From the NCBI RefSeq assembly GCF_000009045.1, contig NC_000964.3, positions 2,170,001 to 2,234,000 on the forward strand: a stretch of 64,000 nt of DNA, given 5' to 3'. Under the pieces are notes generated by a model. It was not told where the DNA came from and did not search any database. It worked only from the letters and a program-made list of their open reading frames with translations. This DNA comes from Bacillus subtilis subsp. subtilis str. 168 (GTDB lineage: Bacteria; Bacillota; Bacilli; Bacillales; Bacillaceae). Position numbers and translations under genes: made by a program. Positions 40,263 to 57,280 of this stretch are shown one piece after another. The first letter of the stretch is position 1; each line of letters opens with the position of its first letter.

Positions 40263-40278
40263 TAAAATTCCAATTTTA
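40263..40278. repeat. TAAAA-N6-TTTTA boundary site
   Basis: TAAAAttccaaTTTTA, between the yopJ terminator and the aimR promoter. Confidence 0.75.
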
Positions 40279-43082: not shown

Positions 43083-43478
43083 TTAATTTCGTAGGAATAT
43101 CGAATCCCAAAACCAATAAATAAACGCAGCTACAATACTCATAATGTAATACTCAAAGCTTCTGAACATGGTAAGAGCATTTGGCGGATAATCAACAAAC
43201 CAGAACAAAAACACAGCTGAAAAGGCCACTGCAATATAAATTAAAAAATTGATCAAACTGAATTTTCTGCGCCTTCTTCTTAGCCACACTTGCAAAGGGG
43301 CAGCAAACACCAAGTAAGTGATTAAAGCGTAAAATGCAATGATGGCAATTGTGACTAATGCTATTGCCATAAATCCAGAGTAAACAAACAGATACAGACC
43401 AAAAATTAGACCAAATGACAAACTTGAAAACGCCAGAGTATAAACATAACTGTTTAACGCTTTTTGATTGAGGCTCAA
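43083..43478 (-). CDS. yopD: Multi-pass membrane protein (131 aa)
   Basis: Four hydrophobic segments; GGAGGTG RBS. Confidence 0.82.
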   Translation of the reverse strand: MSLNQKALNSYVYTLAFSSLSFGLIFGLYLFVYSGFMAIALVTIAIIAFYALITYLVFAAPLQVWLRRRRRKFSLINFLIYIAVAFSAVFLFWFVDYPPNALTMFRSFEYYIMSIVAAFIYWFWDSIFLRN

Positions 43479-43535
43479 ATCAGCACCTCCGCTTGTTTCA
43501 CATTTCCCTTTAAAATCGTAGTTTTTAGATTTCAG

Positions 43536-44864
43536 TTACAGTTGGTCTTTAACAACTGATCTATATCTAATTAAAAAGGCCTCTAGTCTCCCCAACTCTG
43601 TTTTATGGTAATCATGATGAGTCCCTTCGGTTTCTGGAAATAATGGATTTTTGATAGGAAGCGATTCTGGTGAGTCCTTATGACTTTGGAACGTTTCCCA
43701 AGCTACGGGGTCAGATATTTGGAATGTCTCGCCCAATAACGAACAATGTCCACTGTCTTTTCTTTGCCTAACAGGAATAGCATAATTCTTATATAGCTTG
43801 TAATTTTCAATTGTTTGTCTGTTAATCTTAGAAGACAAATAACAGATTCCCCAGTATTCCGAAGACTCTGTCTGTTTAACCCATTCAAGCAAAAATTGAG
43901 GAATGATATATTCTGGTTTAAAAATGTCTTTTTGTTTTTTTACTCTAATTAGGCATGCAGATATTAAAATCCATGTCATAAAGTATGCATTAAATTTATA
44001 TATTTTTCTTCTAAATGTTATTTCAAAAAATTTCTTTAGATTATCTGCCAGTTCCGTAGGTGAAACACTTAAATCCAGAATTTTTATATCTTCATCCTCA
44101 AGGTGAAAAACCGAAGTGTAGGTAGTATTTAAGTCAGGCCTTCCTAGTTCTTCCCAACAAACAAGTGATGAACTTCCAAGGTAAAGACATGGAAATCCTG
44201 GTATACTAAAACGATTTGTGCGTATTATTCCTCTCTTCTCAAATGGTATATGAAACATATCATCTTTAGAAAAAACCTCTGTGTTACTGGTTCTCATTCT
44301 AAAGAATTTACAAGGAATACGAATACTATCAATGTTATATAAGAGCAGCTCTTCAATGTTAACCTCTTCAGAAAAGATATTCATTCCTTTATCAAATTCA
44401 GCATATGCTAAATGCACATAACCATCTAAGTAAAGTTCAATTGTTTTAGTAATTTGTTGCGCAAAAGATTCTATCTTTGTGATTTTTGATGAATCGAATG
44501 ATTTTCTATTTGGTAGCTTATGCAATTCTTCTATATATTCTGTATAAACATTCTCCATAAAAGCATCTAAATCATCCCCACCCGTTCTTTCTATTGGAAT
44601 ATCGCATTTATCAATAATAAAACTTAATATTGGATCTATTTCAATAGTCCATTCAATTAAAATGTCTAACCTTTCTTTATTTGAAAAGGTGCTGGTGTTA
44701 ATTTTTTCCTCCCCAATAACATCATTGGTGTTTTTGTCTATAAATTCAGGTTTTACTGTTAACTCTTTAAAAATATCAAATGCAAGCTCTTTCAAAGAAT
44801 CATTAATTTCCTCATGTTTCGATAATTCTTTTTTTAGCCTTTTAGCTTTTCTATACAAATCCAT
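43536..44864 (-). CDS. yopC: RES-domain protein (predicted NAD+-consuming toxin)
   Basis: NRFSIPGFPCLYLG..CWEE, EYIIPQFLLEWV, GICYLSS RES motifs. Confidence 0.82.
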   Translation of the reverse strand: MDLYRKAKRLKKELSKHEEINDSLKELAFDIFKELTVKPEFIDKNTNDVIGEEKINTSTFSNKERLDILIEWTIEIDPILSFIIDKCDIPIERTGGDDLDAFMENVYTEYIEELHKLPNRKSFDSSKITKIESFAQQITKTIELYLDGYVHLAYAEFDKGMNIFSEEVNIEELLLYNIDSIRIPCKFFRMRTSNTEVFSKDDMFHIPFEKRGIIRTNRFSIPGFPCLYLGSSSLVCWEELGRPDLNTTYTSVFHLEDEDIKILDLSVSPTELADNLKKFFEITFRRKIYKFNAYFMTWILISACLIRVKKQKDIFKPEYIIPQFLLEWVKQTESSEYWGICYLSSKINRQTIENYKLYKNYAIPVRQRKDSGHCSLLGETFQISDPVAWETFQSHKDSPESLPIKNPLFPETEGTHHDYHKTELGRLEAFLIRYRSVVKDQL

Positions 44865-44971
44865 TTATGTTCTCCTTATTAATTTTTCACCTTTTCCATA
44901 TAAGTACGATTTTATGTAGACCTGGAAAACTTGTAATTCCTTCCTATGCTTGTAACTTTAGTATACCATTT

Positions 44972-45199
44972 TCATCCTGAGTGATCGATATGGTTATGGC
45001 TTTTTTCGAATATCAGCAATTCCTGCAGCTCGATGTTTAGGTATGTACAGACTTTATCTAACAGATCTCTTGGATACCGCTCCATTTCGTCATTATAAAG
45101 CTTTCTGACAGTTGGATACTCATGATCAATATCTCTAGATAGCTTCCGGATACTGATCTTTCTTTCGTCTATTATGGACTTTAAATTTGATCTAATCAT
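44972..45199 (-). CDS. yopB: XRE-family HTH regulator
   Basis: [21 protein letters not shown]...[13 protein letters not shown]. Confidence 0.88.
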
Positions 45200-45459
45200 A
45201 ATTCCACTCTTTTCATTTGTCTTTTATTGATACCTTATAGTAATCAACTGATACATAAAAAAGACCAAGATAAGACTTGGTCAATAATGCATAAATCTAA
45301 GTTCGTTTTATCGTTCTTATTCGTGATCTAAATCGAAAACCGTTTAAACCTTTTTAACTTCTTACAACATAGATACTTAGTCAAAAGCAAATGTTTTTTG
45401 TATGGCAACTCTGAGAAATTTTTATCGCCAACTGACTGTAAATCCTTATAAAGACATTT

Positions 45460-46785
45460 TTAATTGTCTCTTGTTTTCCAAGGGACAAATTCATATACTC
45501 CTTCTATTATAGGTACCTTTAAACGGTTTACATAACTTCCTTCATATCCCAATATTCCAAGTGTTAGTAATTCAAGATACCAAACACCAAGATAAAGTAC
45601 ATGGAGCTTATCTATCGGATTGTCAAAATCAAGTTCCCTTGTAGGATGGACTATCTTATTCCTAAATACAGTAAAAAGGTGTGGGCCATCGTCATAATTA
45701 TCCTTAATGTCAATAAAGAGTTTTGGTATTGATAAGTCAATTGAAAATCTAGATAATATTTCTCTAAATTTCTCTGCTGCATTCATATACTTATATTTCG
45801 ATTTACTAATATTGGATTTTCTGTCTACAATAAGATACACCCACGCCAAAGTTTCCAATGCAACCTGAACAGATACCACCTTGTTTTCTACTATACTTGA
45901 TGAATGTGCTTGGGAGTACCAACTCAACACTTCCCATAAAACTTTATTCCAAAAAGGATCTTCTTGCTTCTCAATCACCTTTGGAAATAAATGTTCTAAG
46001 GATGGAGATTTTTGTTTTGGAAACCAAGTAATATTATTAGTCCAGCCATCTATTAATGGAACTTGGTATTTACTCCATATTACCTCCTCGTTGTGGTATC
46101 CTTCCAATGTAGGGATAGCAACATGTCTACCTGCTGAAAAGGATAATAACCAATAAAGCCCTGAAATAAGTGGTTCTACTTCTTTAGTATCAAATAATTT
46201 ATCATCCACTCTTTTTAAATATCCCACATGTGTTATTAAGTATCCACCCGAATTTTTTAATCTATCAAAGATTTTTTTGTTTGAATAGTCATATCGCTTA
46301 TCCAAAATTATTTCCCAATCTTTATATTTTAATTTTGTTCTCCCTGAAAATTTAAACCTTCCATGCACAATCCTTCTACCTAAATCATTCACGAAGTTAA
46401 CCACCGTGAATTCCATTCTATTCACTTTAGTTTCAGCTGAGGTTAAAATAGATCGTTTTAGTATCCCTGATACTTTGTTCCCTTTACTTCCGTCTGTTAT
46501 ACCTGAAATAAGAACTTCAGATTTCATAAATCCAGGTACATTAATCATCATATTATTACTTTTCATTGCCTTTTCAAATTCGAAAAGCTTGCTAAGATTG
46601 CCTGAAATGGCTCCTTCAAATATTAGTCTAGCTTTTGGTAAAAATGCAATTTTAACTTCTCCCAAGATTTCAAAAAAATCATCAGCAACTTCAATTGTAA
46701 AGTGGCCGGTATAGATTTTAATCGGTTCATTAATATCGTACTCTAAAAAGGAGGATTCAAGAGCTATATTTTCCAAATTTATCAC
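45460..46785 (-). CDS. yopA: HEPN-domain protein, ApeA-like
   Basis: C-terminal RNKIVH (Rx4H) motif preceded by VALETL; beta-rich N-terminus. Confidence 0.75.
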   Translation of the reverse strand: MINLENIALESSFLEYDINEPIKIYTGHFTIEVADDFFEILGEVKIAFLPKARLIFEGAISGNLSKLFEFEKAMKSNNMMINVPGFMKSEVLISGITDGSKGNKVSGILKRSILTSAETKVNRMEFTVVNFVNDLGRRIVHGRFKFSGRTKLKYKDWEIILDKRYDYSNKKIFDRLKNSGGYLITHVGYLKRVDDKLFDTKEVEPLISGLYWLLSFSAGRHVAIPTLEGYHNEEVIWSKYQVPLIDGWTNNITWFPKQKSPSLEHLFPKVIEKQEDPFWNKVLWEVLSWYSQAHSSSIVENKVVSVQVALETLAWVYLIVDRKSNISKSKYKYMNAAEKFREILSRFSIDLSIPKLFIDIKDNYDDGPHLFTVFRNKIVHPTRELDFDNPIDKLHVLYLGVWYLELLTLGILGYEGSYVNRLKVPIIEGVYEFVPWKTRDN

Positions 46786-46804
46786 CTAATTATTTTCTCA
46801 AATT

Positions 46805-46960
46805 TTAAAGTCTATTATTTAAGTTCTTCATTACTTTTGCAATTCCTTCACTAAGGAGGTCATTCCCCATAGAGTTCCAAACCTGCTTCTTTTCTTTTAA
46901 TTCTCTGTCCCTAATTCTATGCGATTATTTAATGAACCTGTCTTCTTGAAGATCAATCAT
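46805..46960 (-). pseudogene. Small ORF (about 51 codons) interrupted by an in-frame TAA
   Basis: GGAG RBS, ATG at 46960, TAA at codon 12, frame stays open to 46805. Confidence 0.4.
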
Positions 46961-47009
46961 GACCATCTCCAATTTTGTTCTGTACAGCTTTCACTATCCA
47001 TATTCTATT

Positions 47010-47025
47010 TAAAATATGCATTTTA
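47010..47025. repeat. TAAAA-N6-TTTTA boundary site
   Basis: TAAAAtatgcaTTTTA. Confidence 0.75.
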
Positions 47026-47132
47026 TTTTGATATATATCTGAAGCTAAACATTCTTTATTCAAGAAAAGAATCGCTGCTTTGAACTATTGTGACTCATTT
47101 AAAACGGTATAATCACTTGTTAAAGCTAATTC

Positions 47133-47639
47133 CTATCCTTCCCAGGTAATAATATAATTGAGTGGTTCTAACCCCTTTTCTAAACAAAGAACCGTGTACT
47201 CAAATTCTAAATCAAGGATTTCTCCTTCCCATGCCTCATCGAAATTCCCTGACCCTCTTTCTTTTCGATCAATGAAATAGTCCCTCTTCATCTCAATGAT
47301 TTGTTTTTCAAGATCTTCAAATCCCGTAGAATAATCTTGATCAGTATTATGAATTTCTTCATCAATTTTATCGAGTGCAGCGTAAACTTCTTCGTCAGAC
47401 ATGCAATCAACTTGTGAATGCGTGTATCCCAGATTAAGCAGGTCATTTCGGCAGTTATTTGAAATGCTTCCTTGTAATCTATTTGTAAGACTAGACTCAA
47501 ATTTTTCAAGCTGTGATTCCAGCTCAATACGATTGGATTTAAGAGCATCAAGATTAGTATCTAACTCACAGTATTGTGTATTAATTTCATTTTCCAATTC
47601 ATCAAGTCTAGACTCCAGATTAAAAAGTTGCGCATTCAT
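47133..47639 (-). CDS. yonX: Acidic coiled-coil protein (168 aa)
   Basis: GGAGG RBS; heptad-rich N-terminus. Confidence 0.85.
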   Translation of the reverse strand: MNAQLFNLESRLDELENEINTQYCELDTNLDALKSNRIELESQLEKFESSLTNRLQGSISNNCRNDLLNLGYTHSQVDCMSDEEVYAALDKIDEEIHNTDQDYSTGFEDLEKQIIEMKRDYFIDRKERGSGNFDEAWEGEILDLEFEYTVLCLEKGLEPLNYIITWEG

Positions 47640-47654
47640 TTTAACTACCTCCTG

Positions 47655-47747
47655 TTTTTATACATATTATTTGTATTTGTTATTTATATTATAACTTGAT
47701 AATCTATAATAATCAATAATTAAATACATATTTTTTGTATTTGATAT
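47655..47747 (-). promoter_or_regulatory. Two SPBRE copies flanking the yonX SigA promoter
   Basis: SPBRE 47719-47747, then TTGATT-N17-TATAAT (47688-47716), then SPBRE 47655-47683. Confidence 0.78.
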
Positions 47748-49513: not shown

Positions 49514-49765
49514 TTAGTGTGACTTGTTTCTTAGTTTAAGGAATACACAATAGATGATCCATAACAATATGGCAATGATACATGTGACAACAAAAATTGT
49601 GTTGATTAGCGCCTGTCCTTCGCTGCTGAAGTAATCTTTGATGAGTTGAAACATTAAGAATAAGCCAATGAATGTGATATGGGTAAACCATAATGAGAAT
49701 CGTTTCATGTTTGCAATGTGCTTGATCATGTTATAATATGGGTAGGAACTAAAGGAGAAGTTCAT
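49514..49765 (-). CDS. yoyJ: Membrane protein, second gene of the yonT TA locus
   Basis: 83 aa, two TM segments, directly downstream of yonT. Confidence 0.78.
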   Translation of the reverse strand: MNFSFSSYPYYNMIKHIANMKRFSLWFTHITFIGLFLMFQLIKDYFSSEGQALINTIFVVTCIIAILLWIIYCVFLKLRNKSH

Positions 49766-49845
49766 TCCCCTTTAGCTTAGCTCTCATCGGCGTATACGTT
49801 GGCGTTGTCTCTTTGGTCGGAGCCGCTTGCGTATACGCTTTTTCT
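49744..49845 (+). ncRNA. SR6 antisense antitoxin RNA
   Basis: Extended -10 TGtTATAAT at 49729-49737; overlaps the yoyJ start and yonT 3' end; ends in a GCGTATACG hairpin plus T-run; known SR6 arrangement; ends approximate. Confidence 0.6.
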
Positions 49846-49960
49846 TTTTGCTTGTCCCATTCTTTAGGTTTCTTACCTTCTCAACTATTGTTAGACTGTT
49901 GATTGTAAGAACCGTTAAAGATATGAGGAAAGCAACTACGATACCCATTTTCTCAAGCAC
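49784..49960 (-). CDS. yonT: Type I toxin (58 aa, GTG start)
   Basis: One TM helix plus very basic tail; AGGAGGTG RBS. Confidence 0.9.
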   Translation of the reverse strand: MLEKMGIVVAFLISLTVLTINSLTIVEKVRNLKNGTSKKKKRIRKRLRPKRQRQRIRR

Positions 49961-52284: not shown

Positions 52285-52313
52285 TAGACAAATACAAATA
52301 ATATGTATATAAT
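52285..52313 (+). promoter_or_regulatory. SPBRE promoter/operator driving yonP-yonO
   Basis: TAGACA-AATACAAATAATATGTA-TATAAT; degenerate copy at 52533-52551 just before yonO. Confidence 0.88.
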
Positions 52314-55619: not shown

Positions 55620-57280
55620 TTAATGAGGACGACAGGAAAGGCTACCTGCACGCTTTGTCACAAAGAGCTTATGCTCCTAAAAGTGGCAGAGTTGGAAGTT
55701 ATGGAGGAAATTGTCGACCTCCCCTCTTTTCGCTTTTCATCTTCAACTCCGGGTTAATTAATTATAGTTATTTATTTATGGCATGGGGGTGCCGTCAATA
55801 ATTAGTTGATTACTGATATTTGGGATATCAGTTCTCGACTAATGTTCATTTATGAAGGTAAAGACTAATCTAAATGAATATTAGTGGAGATTCCTCTCCA
55901 GTGTGAACTAGCTTTTCTCGATTAAACAATATCTACTCCCTTCTTTTCTGTATCATTCTGACACAAAACTGCGGCTGGTCATTGCAGTTAGTCGGATAAT
56001 AGTCATTTATGAGGGTGCGAGGTTAACTCGGATGTCTGTATCTTCAGGAGACAGATAAATGGCTATTATCGGGCTAAACATGTCGGTAAGACCTTTGCTA
56101 CTCAAGTTTTTTATGTAGGGTGAATCCCATCACAGTCTTACTATGGGTGACATGTATCCCTGAATATTAATTGCGGTGTACTGCTTCGGCTTACACTTAG
56201 GGAATGTAGATGCGTCTCCCTTCCCTTTAAATAATGCCCTTGTAAGCTTCGATGCTTATTATGCGGTCAACAAAATTTTTCCGGGTAAACGAGGCTTTGA
56301 AATTACATACCCTCGTAAAATAAGTGATATGGTTTTGGGCGCTTGATCACCGCTGTCATTTCACAGAAAAGGATTATTTTCGGTCTTGCCTTTTCCTTTC
56401 ACTTAGTAACATATTCGCTACTTTTCCTTCAAGAAACTTACCTTTCCCATGCACATACCTCCTTACACGGGTCAGAGAAAACTGTGCAAAATAAATGGCG
56501 AGAGTTTGAGACGCTTTGTTTCTCAATAAGGCGTGTAACCTGACAAGAGAGACTGAAAACGCCATTGAGAAGGCTTATAATGGGTCTTTCCTTCTCATTA
56601 TTGGTGTTTCGCCACCATAATGTGTCGAGGTTTAGAGTTAGTATTTCATTGTCTGATCGAGAGTAGCCGATTAATCCCGCGTGGGGGACACTAAAGATAC
56701 CGCGATACGTCCAGCTTTGGGATTCCTTCCATTGCCGCTACTAATCAAGGCTTCACTGTGAATTCAGAGATTTTACACAGTTCTTAAATGAATTAGCTCA
56801 TCTGCCATGTGCAGAAGGAGAATCAGTTTTCGCACAGCGATTACCGGTTTATATGCTCATGTACCATGATGTACAAGGAGTTCCTGAAGACGTTATTTTG
56901 GCGTCTTTTGATATTTCGACTTACTTATAGTTTGTCAACTGCAAAGGTTTCAGTCGCTGAACCCGTAATCAGCGTAATCCCTGTCGATCTGAAGGCTTGC
57001 GTCCCAACGTGAGCTAATGACGTAGGTGAAACGGGGTTAGAATGTAATCAGAACAAGGTCATCTAAATCGTTAGAAGGCCTTTTTGTGCTTGCGTTTTAC
57101 TGATCAGCCGGAATGTGTTTACGAGCCTTCCGGTACGCAAGTTATCAATAATCTCCTTCGGGCGTTTCCCCAACGCCTATCCGACTTATCTTTCATCTCC
57201 TTTATATCCCCTTCTCGGACGTTACCGATGCTTCGGATCATCGGGCTTCCGAAGGAGCTTATTGTACGTAAATAGAAAAT
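55620..57280 (+). ncRNA. Putative large structured non-coding RNA (about 1.7 kb)
   Basis: No credible ORF; many stems with + strand G-U pairs, UUCG loops and long-range helices (see findings); ends approximate. Confidence 0.6.

Follow-up and report, generated by a model that had tools for sequence, protein, structure and literature searches.

Candidate single-gene conflict modules yopA and yopC in a yopB-anchored cargo hotspot of Bacillus phage SPβ

We examined the yopA-yopC interval (positions 43511 to 47025) in a 64,000-nucleotide stretch of the Bacillus subtilis 168 genome (the window), the whole of which is Bacillus phage SPβ (SPBc2, NC_001884; 100% identity), and found that it is a cargo hotspot anchored by yopB and filled in SPβ by two independent modules, yopA and yopC. 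Our preferred reading, to which we assign a probability of about 0.55, is that these are two unrelated single-gene conflict modules that are exchanged separately, flank yopB in an early-region hotspot, and encode effectors of abortive-infection type. Gene anatomy, catalytic-residue conservation, family sizes, module independence, and the hotspot were computed here. As judged from sequence comparison, yopA and yopC are good anti-phage candidates and not one cooperating cassette. What is new is the placement of YopC as an aRES-like protein with a different N-terminal domain, and of YopA as a probable Apea-like HEPN protein with a β-rich domain in a large family outside PADLOC-DB 2.0. Although a result of this kind is no surprise, it can be tested directly in a model system, and it opens up a sizeable, so far uncharacterized family.

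Separately exchanged modules around yopB

The genes of the interval and its two neighbors all lie on the minus strand and are transcribed in the order yonX, yopA, yopB, yopC, yopD:

45460 to 46776, minus strand: yopA, 438 residues from a TTG at 46776; type member of Pfam YopA_M/YopA_C
44972 to 45199, minus strand: yopB, 75 residues with a Cro/C1-type helix-turn-helix (HTH); conserved anchor of the region
43536 to 44864, minus strand: yopC, 442 residues with an N-terminal helical domain and a RES domain; follows yopB after a 107-bp gap
47133 to 47639, minus strand: yonX, first in transcription order, with a 356-bp gap before yopA
43083 to 43478, minus strand: yopD (UPF0715), next after yopC

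In a megablast comparison with 50,697 phage records, 20 other SPβ-like phages keep only yopB and about 75 nt downstream of it from this interval (90 to 98% identity); yopA and yopC are not conserved in those 20 records. By alignment, the yopB homology block runs from the yopB ribosome-binding site (RBS) to about 75 nt past the stop codon, just before the cargo gene. We regard the interval as a cargo hotspot because equivalent slots hold other conflict-type genes in other SPβ-like phages. In or near these slots, Goe12 carries a 565-residue KAP NTPase (L021:2951-4648; PADLOC PDC-S49, 7e-14), and phi3T carries the Mrr_cat endonuclease-like protein phi3T_78 in the yopA slot (L002:6542-7495). Slot cargo also includes a 541-residue NERD nuclease in SPbetaL4 (L023:223-1848) and the DUF5677 protein spr_109 in SPR (L003:417-1538), and two more large cargo proteins (SPbetaL2, 527 residues; spr_99, 345 residues) have no matches at all. 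The arrangement recalls the cargo slots of E. coli P2 and P4, where conserved flanks likewise enclose interchangeable single-gene or small defense-type cargo. Unlike those slots, the yopB slot belongs to a 134-kb Bacillus phage and sits in its early region, which is under repressor control, and expression of its cargo in the lysogen is putative.

The two modules also part company outside SPβ. In 52 fetched loci, yopA-like and yopC-like genes never occur together except in SPβ copies (tblastn). One prophage (L031) keeps positions 46965 to 44898 at 93% identity, a block that takes in 190 bp upstream of yopA, yopA itself, the terminator, and yopB with its tail. It has neither yonX nor yopC-yopD. 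Another (L033) keeps 45198 to 43506 (yopB and yopC) at 85% identity and is without yopA. In prophages of B. amyloliquefaciens and B. licheniformis, one to six genes lie between the yopB-like and yopC-like genes. The noncoding segments that define these modules are as follows:

46777 to 46965, minus strand: upstream segment of yopA, about 190 bp, which travels with yopA in L031 (blastn breakpoint at 46965)
45263 to 45282, minus strand: terminator-like stem-loop with a T-run, 3′ of yopA; annotated as a stem_loop in NC_001884
44895 to 44971, minus strand: yopB tail, about 75 nt, with TGnTATACT, ATTACA-17-TAAAAT, and the direct repeat TTACAAG twice

Because yopA and yopC are independently swappable cargo, they do not form one cooperating cassette. 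An earlier note on this DNA had proposed just that, a HEPN/HTH/RES two-effector cassette bounded by two sites at 43511 and 47010, and the comparative data largely refute it, leaving it a very improbable account. The three genes are adjacent in SPβ, and both large proteins resemble abortive-infection effectors. Against this, co-occurrence is confined to SPβ, the recombination breakpoints of L031 and L033 separate the modules, and yopA is followed by a terminator before yopB begins. The sites differ in sequence and do not pair, and therefore the interval is not a bracketed unit; the first occurs at chance level, and the second is real but general to SPβ-like phages and not tied to yopA or yopC. 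A search for direct or inverted repeats bracketing the interval gave nothing above chance.

Other elements of the earlier description fared better. Open reading frames (ORFs) and Pfam agree on a yopA of about 440 residues, a yopB of the XRE HTH type, and a 442-residue yopC, and the ORF map confirms that no small gene other than yopB stands directly upstream of yopC. Both yopA and yopC are, as stated there, unusually long among tiny neighbors, which encode 43 to 196 residues. Their supposed AT-richness is weak: GC content is 31.5% in yopC and 32.5% in yopA, and the window averages 34.3% (standard deviation 2.2, 1.3-kb windows). The two genes thereby rank near the 8th and 23rd percentiles within the window, slightly low and unremarkable. 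The mechanical ORF of yopA begins at a GTG at 46785 and encodes 441 residues. The real start is probably the TTG at 46776, giving 438 residues, because the annotation agrees, an AGGTGA RBS precedes this codon, and homologues begin with MENIAL. YopA numbering below follows the 438-residue product, except that alignment columns are quoted in 441-residue numbering.

YopC as a divergent RES-domain protein

Our comparisons support YopC as a real but divergent RES-domain protein with conserved catalytic residues, in line with the RES motifs reported previously. Pfam RES (PF08808) matches YopC at 22.4 bits against a cutoff of 23.2 (E value of 1.4e-4, residues 210 to 347) and is matched by 37 of 55 YopC relatives (best, 1.6e-8). 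In the 55-sequence alignment, R218, S220, Y228, E239, and N360 never vary, and S344 is kept in at least 90% of the sequences. The RES clade is marked by its eponymous R, E, and S along with Y and N residues that replace the classical ADP-ribosyltransferase (ART) triad (PMC9503650), and the conserved YopC residues are this R/E/S set plus Y and N. A word-indexed search retrieved 863 YopC relatives, mostly of about 360 to 460 residues, from Bacillota, Bacteroidota, Myxococcota, and metagenomes; 21 phage contigs carry them. The AlphaFold2 model (predicted local distance difference test score [pLDDT], 91.4) is helical from residue 1 to about 180, followed by an α/β domain. The N-terminal domain has no Pfam match in YopC or its 55 relatives. 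The parts of YopC map as follows:

44325 to 44864, minus strand: N-terminal α-helical domain, residues 1 to about 180, with helices taken from the model; putative regulatory or sensor part
43665 to 44318, minus strand: RES domain, residues about 183 to 400, from Pfam RES, conserved columns, and hhalign to aRES
44211 to 44213, minus strand: R218, conserved RES residue
44181 to 44183, minus strand: Y228, conserved RES residue
44148 to 44150, minus strand: E239, conserved RES residue
43833 to 43835, minus strand: S344, conserved RES residue
43785 to 43787, minus strand: N360, conserved RES residue

Standalone RES proteins are now a validated defense family, which overtakes the background on which the earlier note had drawn. 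These aRES proteins, described as two-domain RES proteins of defense islands that protect E. coli (Osterman et al., 2026 preprint, bioRxiv 10.64898/2026.01.28.702374), convert NAD+ to nicotinamide and ADP-ribose-1′′-phosphate (ADPR-1''-phosphate), an activity that needs the RES active-site residues; the authors define them as RES plus PF18870 (HEPN/RES-NTD1) within 300 to 600 residues (10.64898/2026.01.28.702374). We compared YopC with three cloned aRES proteins (Table S4 of that paper) by profile-profile alignment with hhalign, which aligned YopC residues 182 to 368 to aRES residues 175 to 357 over 175 columns (E value of 3.6e-4, probability of 37%). The alignment places YopC R218, Y228, E239, S344, and N360 in register with aRES R215, Y225, E236, S334, and N349, together with the EYIIPQ helix. 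Both are standalone proteins within the 300- to 600-residue range that join an N-terminal accessory domain to a C-terminal RES domain, and both aRES and the YopC relatives occur in defense or mobile islands without an operon partner, with one possible exception described below.

The N-terminal parts differ. That of aRES has a Cys-rich, zinc-ribbon-like start and PF18870, whereas that of YopC does not align with it and is unrelated by sequence; YopC is also phage encoded, unlike aRES. A Pfam scan found PF18870 neither in YopC (E value of ≤1) nor in its 55 relatives (E value of ≤0.01), a comparison to be read knowing that the authors' own criterion used hhsearch. Since the N termini do not align, PF18870 is not matched, and YopC is absent from the published aRES list, we place it outside aRES as defined. 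It is aRES-like in layout and probably also in chemistry.

The position of yopB raises the alternative that yopB-yopC is a type II Xre-RES toxin-antitoxin (TA) pair, in which YopB would neutralize YopC and repress the operon, serving prophage stabilization or causing abortive infection when YopB decays. YopC shares a RES catalytic domain and an upstream same-strand HTH gene with the Xre-RES systems MbcTA, ResTA/PrsTA, ParST, and NatRT; the two genes are 107 bp apart in SPβ and are also adjacent in L033 (gap of about 117 bp) and in L038. Phage-borne RES and HTH pairs have moreover been proposed as TA systems (PMC9503650). The sequence of YopB does not fit this role. Pfam HTH_26 covers residues 5 to 66 of its 75 residues (3.6e-17), and Pfam finds no other domain and no C-terminal RES-binding antitoxin domain, for which there is no room; Xre-RES antitoxins do carry such a toxin-binding domain. 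Nor does yopB depend on yopC, being 87 to 97% conserved in phages without yopC (20 phage records) and separated from the yopC-like gene by one to six genes or up to 3.4 kb in other prophages, while YopC relatives outside SPβ-like phages have no yopB-like neighbor. RES toxins are small, single-domain proteins of about 150 to 200 residues, whereas the 442-residue YopC has an extra domain of its own. A TA pair is thus improbable, and the suggestion that yopB is an Xre antitoxin did not hold up; yopB is probably a conserved phage regulator and recombination anchor.

Neighborhoods of YopC relatives resemble those of defense genes. As single genes, relatives stand beside a BamHI restriction-modification system and integrases, beside Schlafen-like and VapE genes, near an MNT-HepT pair, and, in L027, beside a Dam methyltransferase and AAA_15/21 ATPases. 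The last locus, from Sphingobacterium faecium (L027:2845-6098), contains an HATPase_c_3 protein (504 residues), a 220-residue protein, and a YopC-like RES protein (365 residues) whose ORFs overlap or abut, with the trio adjoining the Dam methyltransferase and an AAA_15/21 ATPase gene. Here the RES protein could be part of a three-gene system and not a standalone protein.

YopA as a candidate HEPN protein

The C-terminal half of YopA is probably an Apea-like HEPN ribonuclease (RNase) domain. YopA has no match in our local Pfam copy, NCBIfam, or PADLOC, and precomputed annotations of YopA and its relatives give the Pfam families YopA_M and YopA_C (PF26308 and PF27216), whose models are newer than the local copy. 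An exhaustive HMMER search recovered 2,547 representative clusters at an E value of ≤1e-3 and 368 at ≤1e-30, nearly all of them full-length proteins of about 430 to 470 residues; this search was required, as a word-indexed search gave only five or six relatives, even with a profile. Across 86 relatives, H380 of the RNKIVH motif never varies, and R375 and N376 are retained in at least 90% (441-residue numbering). Further conserved columns are Q307/E311 and, in the N-terminal half, G181, T185, H186, F216, and G219, where the motifs GGYxITH and LSFxxGR stand out. The AlphaFold2 model (pLDDT, 95.4) is β-rich from residue 1 to about 250 and helical from about 260 to 412, with RNKIVH at the end of a helix spanning residues 367 to 379. 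The corresponding features are as follows:

46027 to 46776, minus strand: N-terminal β-rich domain, residues 1 to about 250; putative sensor or regulatory part
45463 to 46005, minus strand: C-terminal helical domain, residues about 258 to 438, with seven helices, all but one of them 10 residues or longer; probable Apea-like HEPN RNase domain
45841 to 45888 region, minus strand: helix-1 motif VENKVVSVQVALETL, which aligns to the ApeA helix-1 motif
45646 to 45663, minus strand: RNKIVH, R372 to H377; candidate HEPN catalytic motif (Rx4-6H)

Evidence for a HEPN domain is indirect. Pfam HEPN_Apea gives weak matches in 8 of the 86 relatives (best, 3e-4) at residues about 332 to 417, and HEPN_MAE_28990 and PADLOC CARF_HEPN each match one relative. 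Pfam HEPN matches with checked coordinates fall between residues about 297 and 417, the motif-bearing part of YopA. Of the HEPN motif named in the earlier note (Rx4H), then, the motif itself stood, with its invariant H and its R and N conserved, and the HEPN domain matches are weak. Together with the YopC alignment, these columns show that the predicted catalytic residues are conserved among homologues in both families, a point on which the earlier note's proposal had been made to depend.

The same note called YopA ApeA-type, and this assignment did not survive comparison with ApeA itself. ApeA proteins are predominantly α-helical, about 580 to 600 residues long, and built of N-terminal, Mid, and split-HEPN domains (bioRxiv 10.64898/2026.01.26.701840), with a ligand pocket and a doughnut-shaped oligomer (Juozapaitis et al., 10.64898/2026.01.26.701840). 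We took full-length Ec1 and Ec2 ApeA sequences from E. coli genomes by way of the cloned DNA given in the ApeA preprint. Both ApeA (Gao 2020) and YopA are single proteins with a C-terminal HEPN domain (predicted in YopA), and they have in common RN-x-IVH and a resembling helix-1 motif; the two motifs follow each other in YopA as they do in Ec2ApeA. BLASTP reached an E value of 0.094 over 35 residues; it aligned the helix-1 motifs and, separately, RNKIVH with RNLIVH of Ec2ApeA (R502 to H507). In hhalign, however, the YopA family and Ec1/Ec2 ApeA reached a probability of 0.25% (E value of 0.24), with only the helix-1 motif aligned. Because of this value, and because the larger ApeA is mostly α-helical where the 438-residue YopA has a predicted β-rich N-terminal half, YopA is by profile comparison not a member of the ApeA family; PADLOC, too, gave no ApeA match.

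The layout of YopA resembles that of an architecture described by Anantharaman et al. in 2013 (PMC3710099), ApeA-NTD1 plus Apea-like HEPN, in which a mostly β-strand N-terminal domain of about 300 residues is joined to the HEPN domain, often beside restriction-modification genes. Pfam ApeA_NTD1 is matched by neither YopA nor its 86 relatives; Pfam files YopA under YopA_M/YopA_C. DARNA/PD-T7-3 was considered as a relative of YopA and rejected, since the domain order is opposite (an N-terminal HEPN and an α-helical C-terminal sensor in DARNA) and there is no sequence match. The logic expected of DARNA/PD-T7-3, of AbiD/F-type proteins, and of YopA would nevertheless be the same, an inactive HEPN dimer that responds to an infection cue by cleaving tRNA.

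Ec2ApeA, like YopA, is prophage cargo; its gene (L025:2605-4356) lies in a P2-like prophage between baseplate assembly protein V and virion morphogenesis genes. RefSeq labels Ec2ApeA a hypothetical protein and Ec1ApeA as ApeA.

A locus search with a 12-sequence YopA alignment yielded six genome loci and two viral loci. YopA-like genes are single and lie beside integrases, resolvases, type I restriction gene fragments, UvrD helicase, and HNH endonuclease genes; others neighbor Y-family polymerase and YolD genes or phage 5-hydroxymethyldeoxyuridine (5-hmdU) DNA-modification genes. Both the YopA and YopC families occur as single genes in mobile or defense-type neighborhoods.

Individual loci add detail. 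A small ORF with a type I R-subunit C-terminal domain (T1RH-like_C or EcoEI_R_C) precedes each of the closest YopA relatives (47 to 48% identity; L004:7313-7897, L005:1565-2149, and L006:3213-3488), and these ORFs are either remnants of an invaded restriction-modification locus or a recurrent YopA partner. In a Bacillota metagenome-assembled genome (L019:2869-7093), a distant YopA-like gene (26% identity) directly follows 5-hmdU DNA kinase and thymidylate-synthase-like genes, which are phage thymidine hypermodification genes. In two Paenibacillus species (L015:6167-10052 and L016:5911-9266), the YopA-like gene comes after Y-family polymerase (IMS) and YolD-like genes, followed in L015 by a resolvase gene; SPβ has a uvrX-yolD pair of its own elsewhere.

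Proposed activities, expression timing, and regulatory sites

We infer the enzymatic activities, autoinhibition, triggers, expression timing, beneficiary, and anti-phage role of YopA and YopC. YopC would be a standalone, self-regulated RES NAD+ phosphorylase with an ADP-ribosyltransferase fold and a fused N-terminal helical domain. By analogy with aRES and RES toxins, it may stay inactive until a phage-derived cue lifts its autoinhibition, whereupon it would convert NAD+ to nicotinamide and ADP-ribose-1''-phosphate, stopping growth and aborting the infection. YopA would be a standalone HEPN-type RNase combining a β-rich N-terminal sensor with an Apea-like HEPN domain that bears RNKIVH, and its active site is probably formed when two copies pair by way of the HEPN domain. 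The validated single-protein HEPN defenses ApeA and DARNA cleave tRNA anticodon loops, and activated YopA would similarly cleave tRNA or mRNA and abort infection. In each protein, the N-terminal domain may serve as sensor or inhibitor. Papers retrieved for yopA, yopB, and yopC were all on Yersinia or unrelated topics, and the paper library searched held no functional study of either YopA or YopC, in agreement with the earlier note.

Several results weigh against the proposed activities. Pfam HEPN matches in the YopA family are all sub-threshold. The full-length YopA model had no HEPN match by Foldseek in PDB (best, 0.075) or in BFVD (best, 0.017, small β-proteins only), and single-sequence and profile searches of PDB sequences gave nothing relevant. 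The full-length YopC model reached at best an E value of 2.4 in PDB, with faint similarity to ART-fold enzymes and no RES toxin, a weak negative in that the model was uncropped; the YopC profile likewise retrieved nothing relevant from PDB sequences. Among the matches to PDB sequences for the two proteins, those to a pollen receptor kinase and to designed helical proteins were spurious. As these searches retrieved neither a solved RES toxin nor a solved HEPN protein, the folds of YopC and YopA are both structurally unconfirmed here. PADLOC-DB 2.0 is blank for YopA and YopC, the one CARF_HEPN being the sole PADLOC match among relatives, so that the PADLOC and structure searches proposed in the earlier note (DefenseFinder/PADLOC and structure search) yielded no PADLOC assignment for either protein and no significant Foldseek match. 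NCBIfam and PHROGs gave no functional label for the proteins of the interval. The profile similarity between aRES and YopC is weak, its probability being only 37%, and the published aRES list has no B. subtilis, B. amyloliquefaciens, or B. licheniformis entries. Known RES toxins also differ in chemistry, and some ADP-ribosylate a protein target and do not degrade NAD+. To these we add the expression context discussed below.

On such grounds, one or both proteins may have another substrate or not be enzymes at all, for example, YopC as a protein ADP-ribosyltransferase like ParT and YopA as a nucleic-acid binder that retains the motif but lacks RNase activity. The absence of a significant structural match for either model, the sub-threshold family-model matches, and the chemical diversity of known RES toxins favor this. 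On the other hand, full catalytic residue sets are strictly conserved across hundreds of divergent relatives, which argues for retained catalysis, and we give such alternatives little credence beside the abortive-infection effectors that we prefer.

Expression timing is the main difficulty for a classical prophage defense. The 20-mer ATACATATTATTTGTATTTG occurs nine times in the window with at most three mismatches, against 0.04 expected, at 278, 5529, 16849, 33022, 40234, 47660, 47724, and 50014 on the plus strand and at 52289 on the minus strand. This sequence is SPBRE, at which the master repressor MrpR has its operator, and matches sites reported at yonX, aimR, yonT, yonP, and other promoters. 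Two copies mark the yonX promoter:

47660 to 47679 and 47724 to 47743, minus strand: two SPBRE copies in the yonX promoter, upstream of yonX and yopA

An MrpR peak was found at the yonX promoter by chromatin affinity purification sequencing (ChAP-seq) (PMC10516654). The SPβ genome has been divided into two early clusters (I and II) and a late one (III), and we take the yopA-yopC region to belong to the early part, probably cluster II, from its position beside lysogeny-control genes. The gap from yonX to yopA contains no terminator-like site, and therefore yopA may be repressed in the lysogen unless the 190-bp segment upstream of it holds a promoter. That segment contains the promoter-like TTGCAA-17-AATAAT (46842 to 46814), a consensus match whose regional frequency is that of chance. 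Lying downstream of the MrpR-bound yonX promoter, yopA and yopC may be silent in the lysogen, which misfits classical prophage defense, and the earlier proposal of a prophage-borne defense is not supported in that form.

This caveat about lysogen expression keeps alive a different account, in which YopA and YopC would be lytic-phase weapons and not a lysogen defense. They would come on after MrpR inactivation or upon fresh infection, during SPβ replication, and could serve to keep out co-infecting phages or satellites, to manipulate NAD+ or RNA of the host, or as a fail-safe. The placement of the yop genes in early clusters fits this account, as do the two SPBRE operators in the yonX promoter directly upstream with MrpR bound in vivo, the lack of a terminator-like site between yonX and yopA, and the tight packing of the yopB-like gene within a same-strand run of early genes in other SPβ-like phages. 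However, yopA travels with 190 bp of upstream sequence and has a terminator of its own in the manner of an autonomous module, a conserved promoter-like segment follows yopB, and relatives also occur in chromosomal islands outside phages. Unrestrained NAD+ depletion or RNA cleavage would moreover hurt the phage's own replication. We consider lytic-phase roles unlikely, though less so than the TA pair or the loss of enzymatic function, and they would alter the timing and beneficiary, not the biochemistry, of the conflict modules that we propose.

The promoter-like segment after yopB is its tail, which is conserved with yopB in SPβ, Goe12, SPR, and SPbetaL8 and partly in L4, with homology stopping before the RBS of the cargo gene. 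TGnTATACT within it is an extended −10-like motif, and the tail may be a fixed promoter for whatever cargo sits there.

A second recurrent element is the palindrome at the 47010 site of the supposed bracket:

47010 to 47025, strand not assigned: palindrome TAAAATATGCATTTTA, TAAAAT-N4-ATTTTA, conserved at the head of the variable segment of SPβ-like phages

TAAAAT-N4-ATTTTA has four copies in the window (16936, 23681, 40263, and 47010) against 0.11 expected; only 10 nt separate the copy at 40263 from the aimR promoter SPBRE. The 18-mer at 47010 is found once in each of 13 SPβ-like loci at the equivalent place, and in an alignment of five phages and one prophage it stands about 20 nt upstream of the RBS and ATG of a small gene. 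L031 has yopA but not the palindrome, which is therefore not yopA specific; it may serve as an operator or a promoter element. In SPβ the small gene looks degenerate. The yonX-yopA gap (46777 to 47132, 356 bp) has no coding-strand ORF of at least 40 residues and no Rfam match, its folding is not unusual (z score of −0.7), and it seems to be the remnant of the small gene that other SPβ-like phages keep behind the 47010 palindrome. The site at 43511, TAAAATCGTAGTTTTTA (TAAAA-N7-TTTTA), is of another kind. This pattern is present twice in the window where 1.07 copies are expected, which is chance level, and its other copy is at 46444 inside yopA. The exact sequence occurs only in SPβ copies, although the L033 homology block ends nearby at 43506. 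We also considered and rejected SPBRE at 43511 or 47010; the nearby SPBRE copies are those at 47660 and 47724.

A bolder reading, tentative and on the whole rather doubtful, would make YopA the founder of a large single-protein HEPN immune family outside the catalogues and YopC a second aRES-like clade, with the yopB slot delivering toxic effectors under early control. The slot would then consist of yopB, its promoter-like tail, and the palindrome, and immunity would act while the phage replicates and not from a dormant prophage. The β-rich domain of YopA had no significant match among solved structures (PDB) or predicted viral structures (BFVD).

These two sizeable effector-like genes can be tested quickly, since few phage-host pairs are as tractable as SPβ and B. 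subtilis 168. If YopC protects, RES/NAD+-phosphorylase defense as known from aRES extends to a second architecture and to Gram-positive phages. SPβ-like phages carry the NARP1 NAD+-rebuilding pathway, and for this reason YopC bears on the NAD+ arms race. If YopA protects, a family of about 2,500 clusters missing from PADLOC-DB 2.0 gains a function and defense gains a new kind of sensor domain. The yopB-anchored hotspot stands whatever the function of its cargo and could be mined across SPβ-like prophages. Its location in a repressor-controlled early region makes one ask at what stage phage-borne abortive-infection genes act and who gains from them.

No Rfam family occurs anywhere in the yopA-yopC interval. 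Elsewhere in the window, Rfam matches on the plus strand are the SR6 antitoxin RNA of the yonT/SR6 type I toxin-antitoxin locus (49746 to 49849, 128 bits) and a DUF3800-VIII RNA (56975 to 57040, 47.5 bits).

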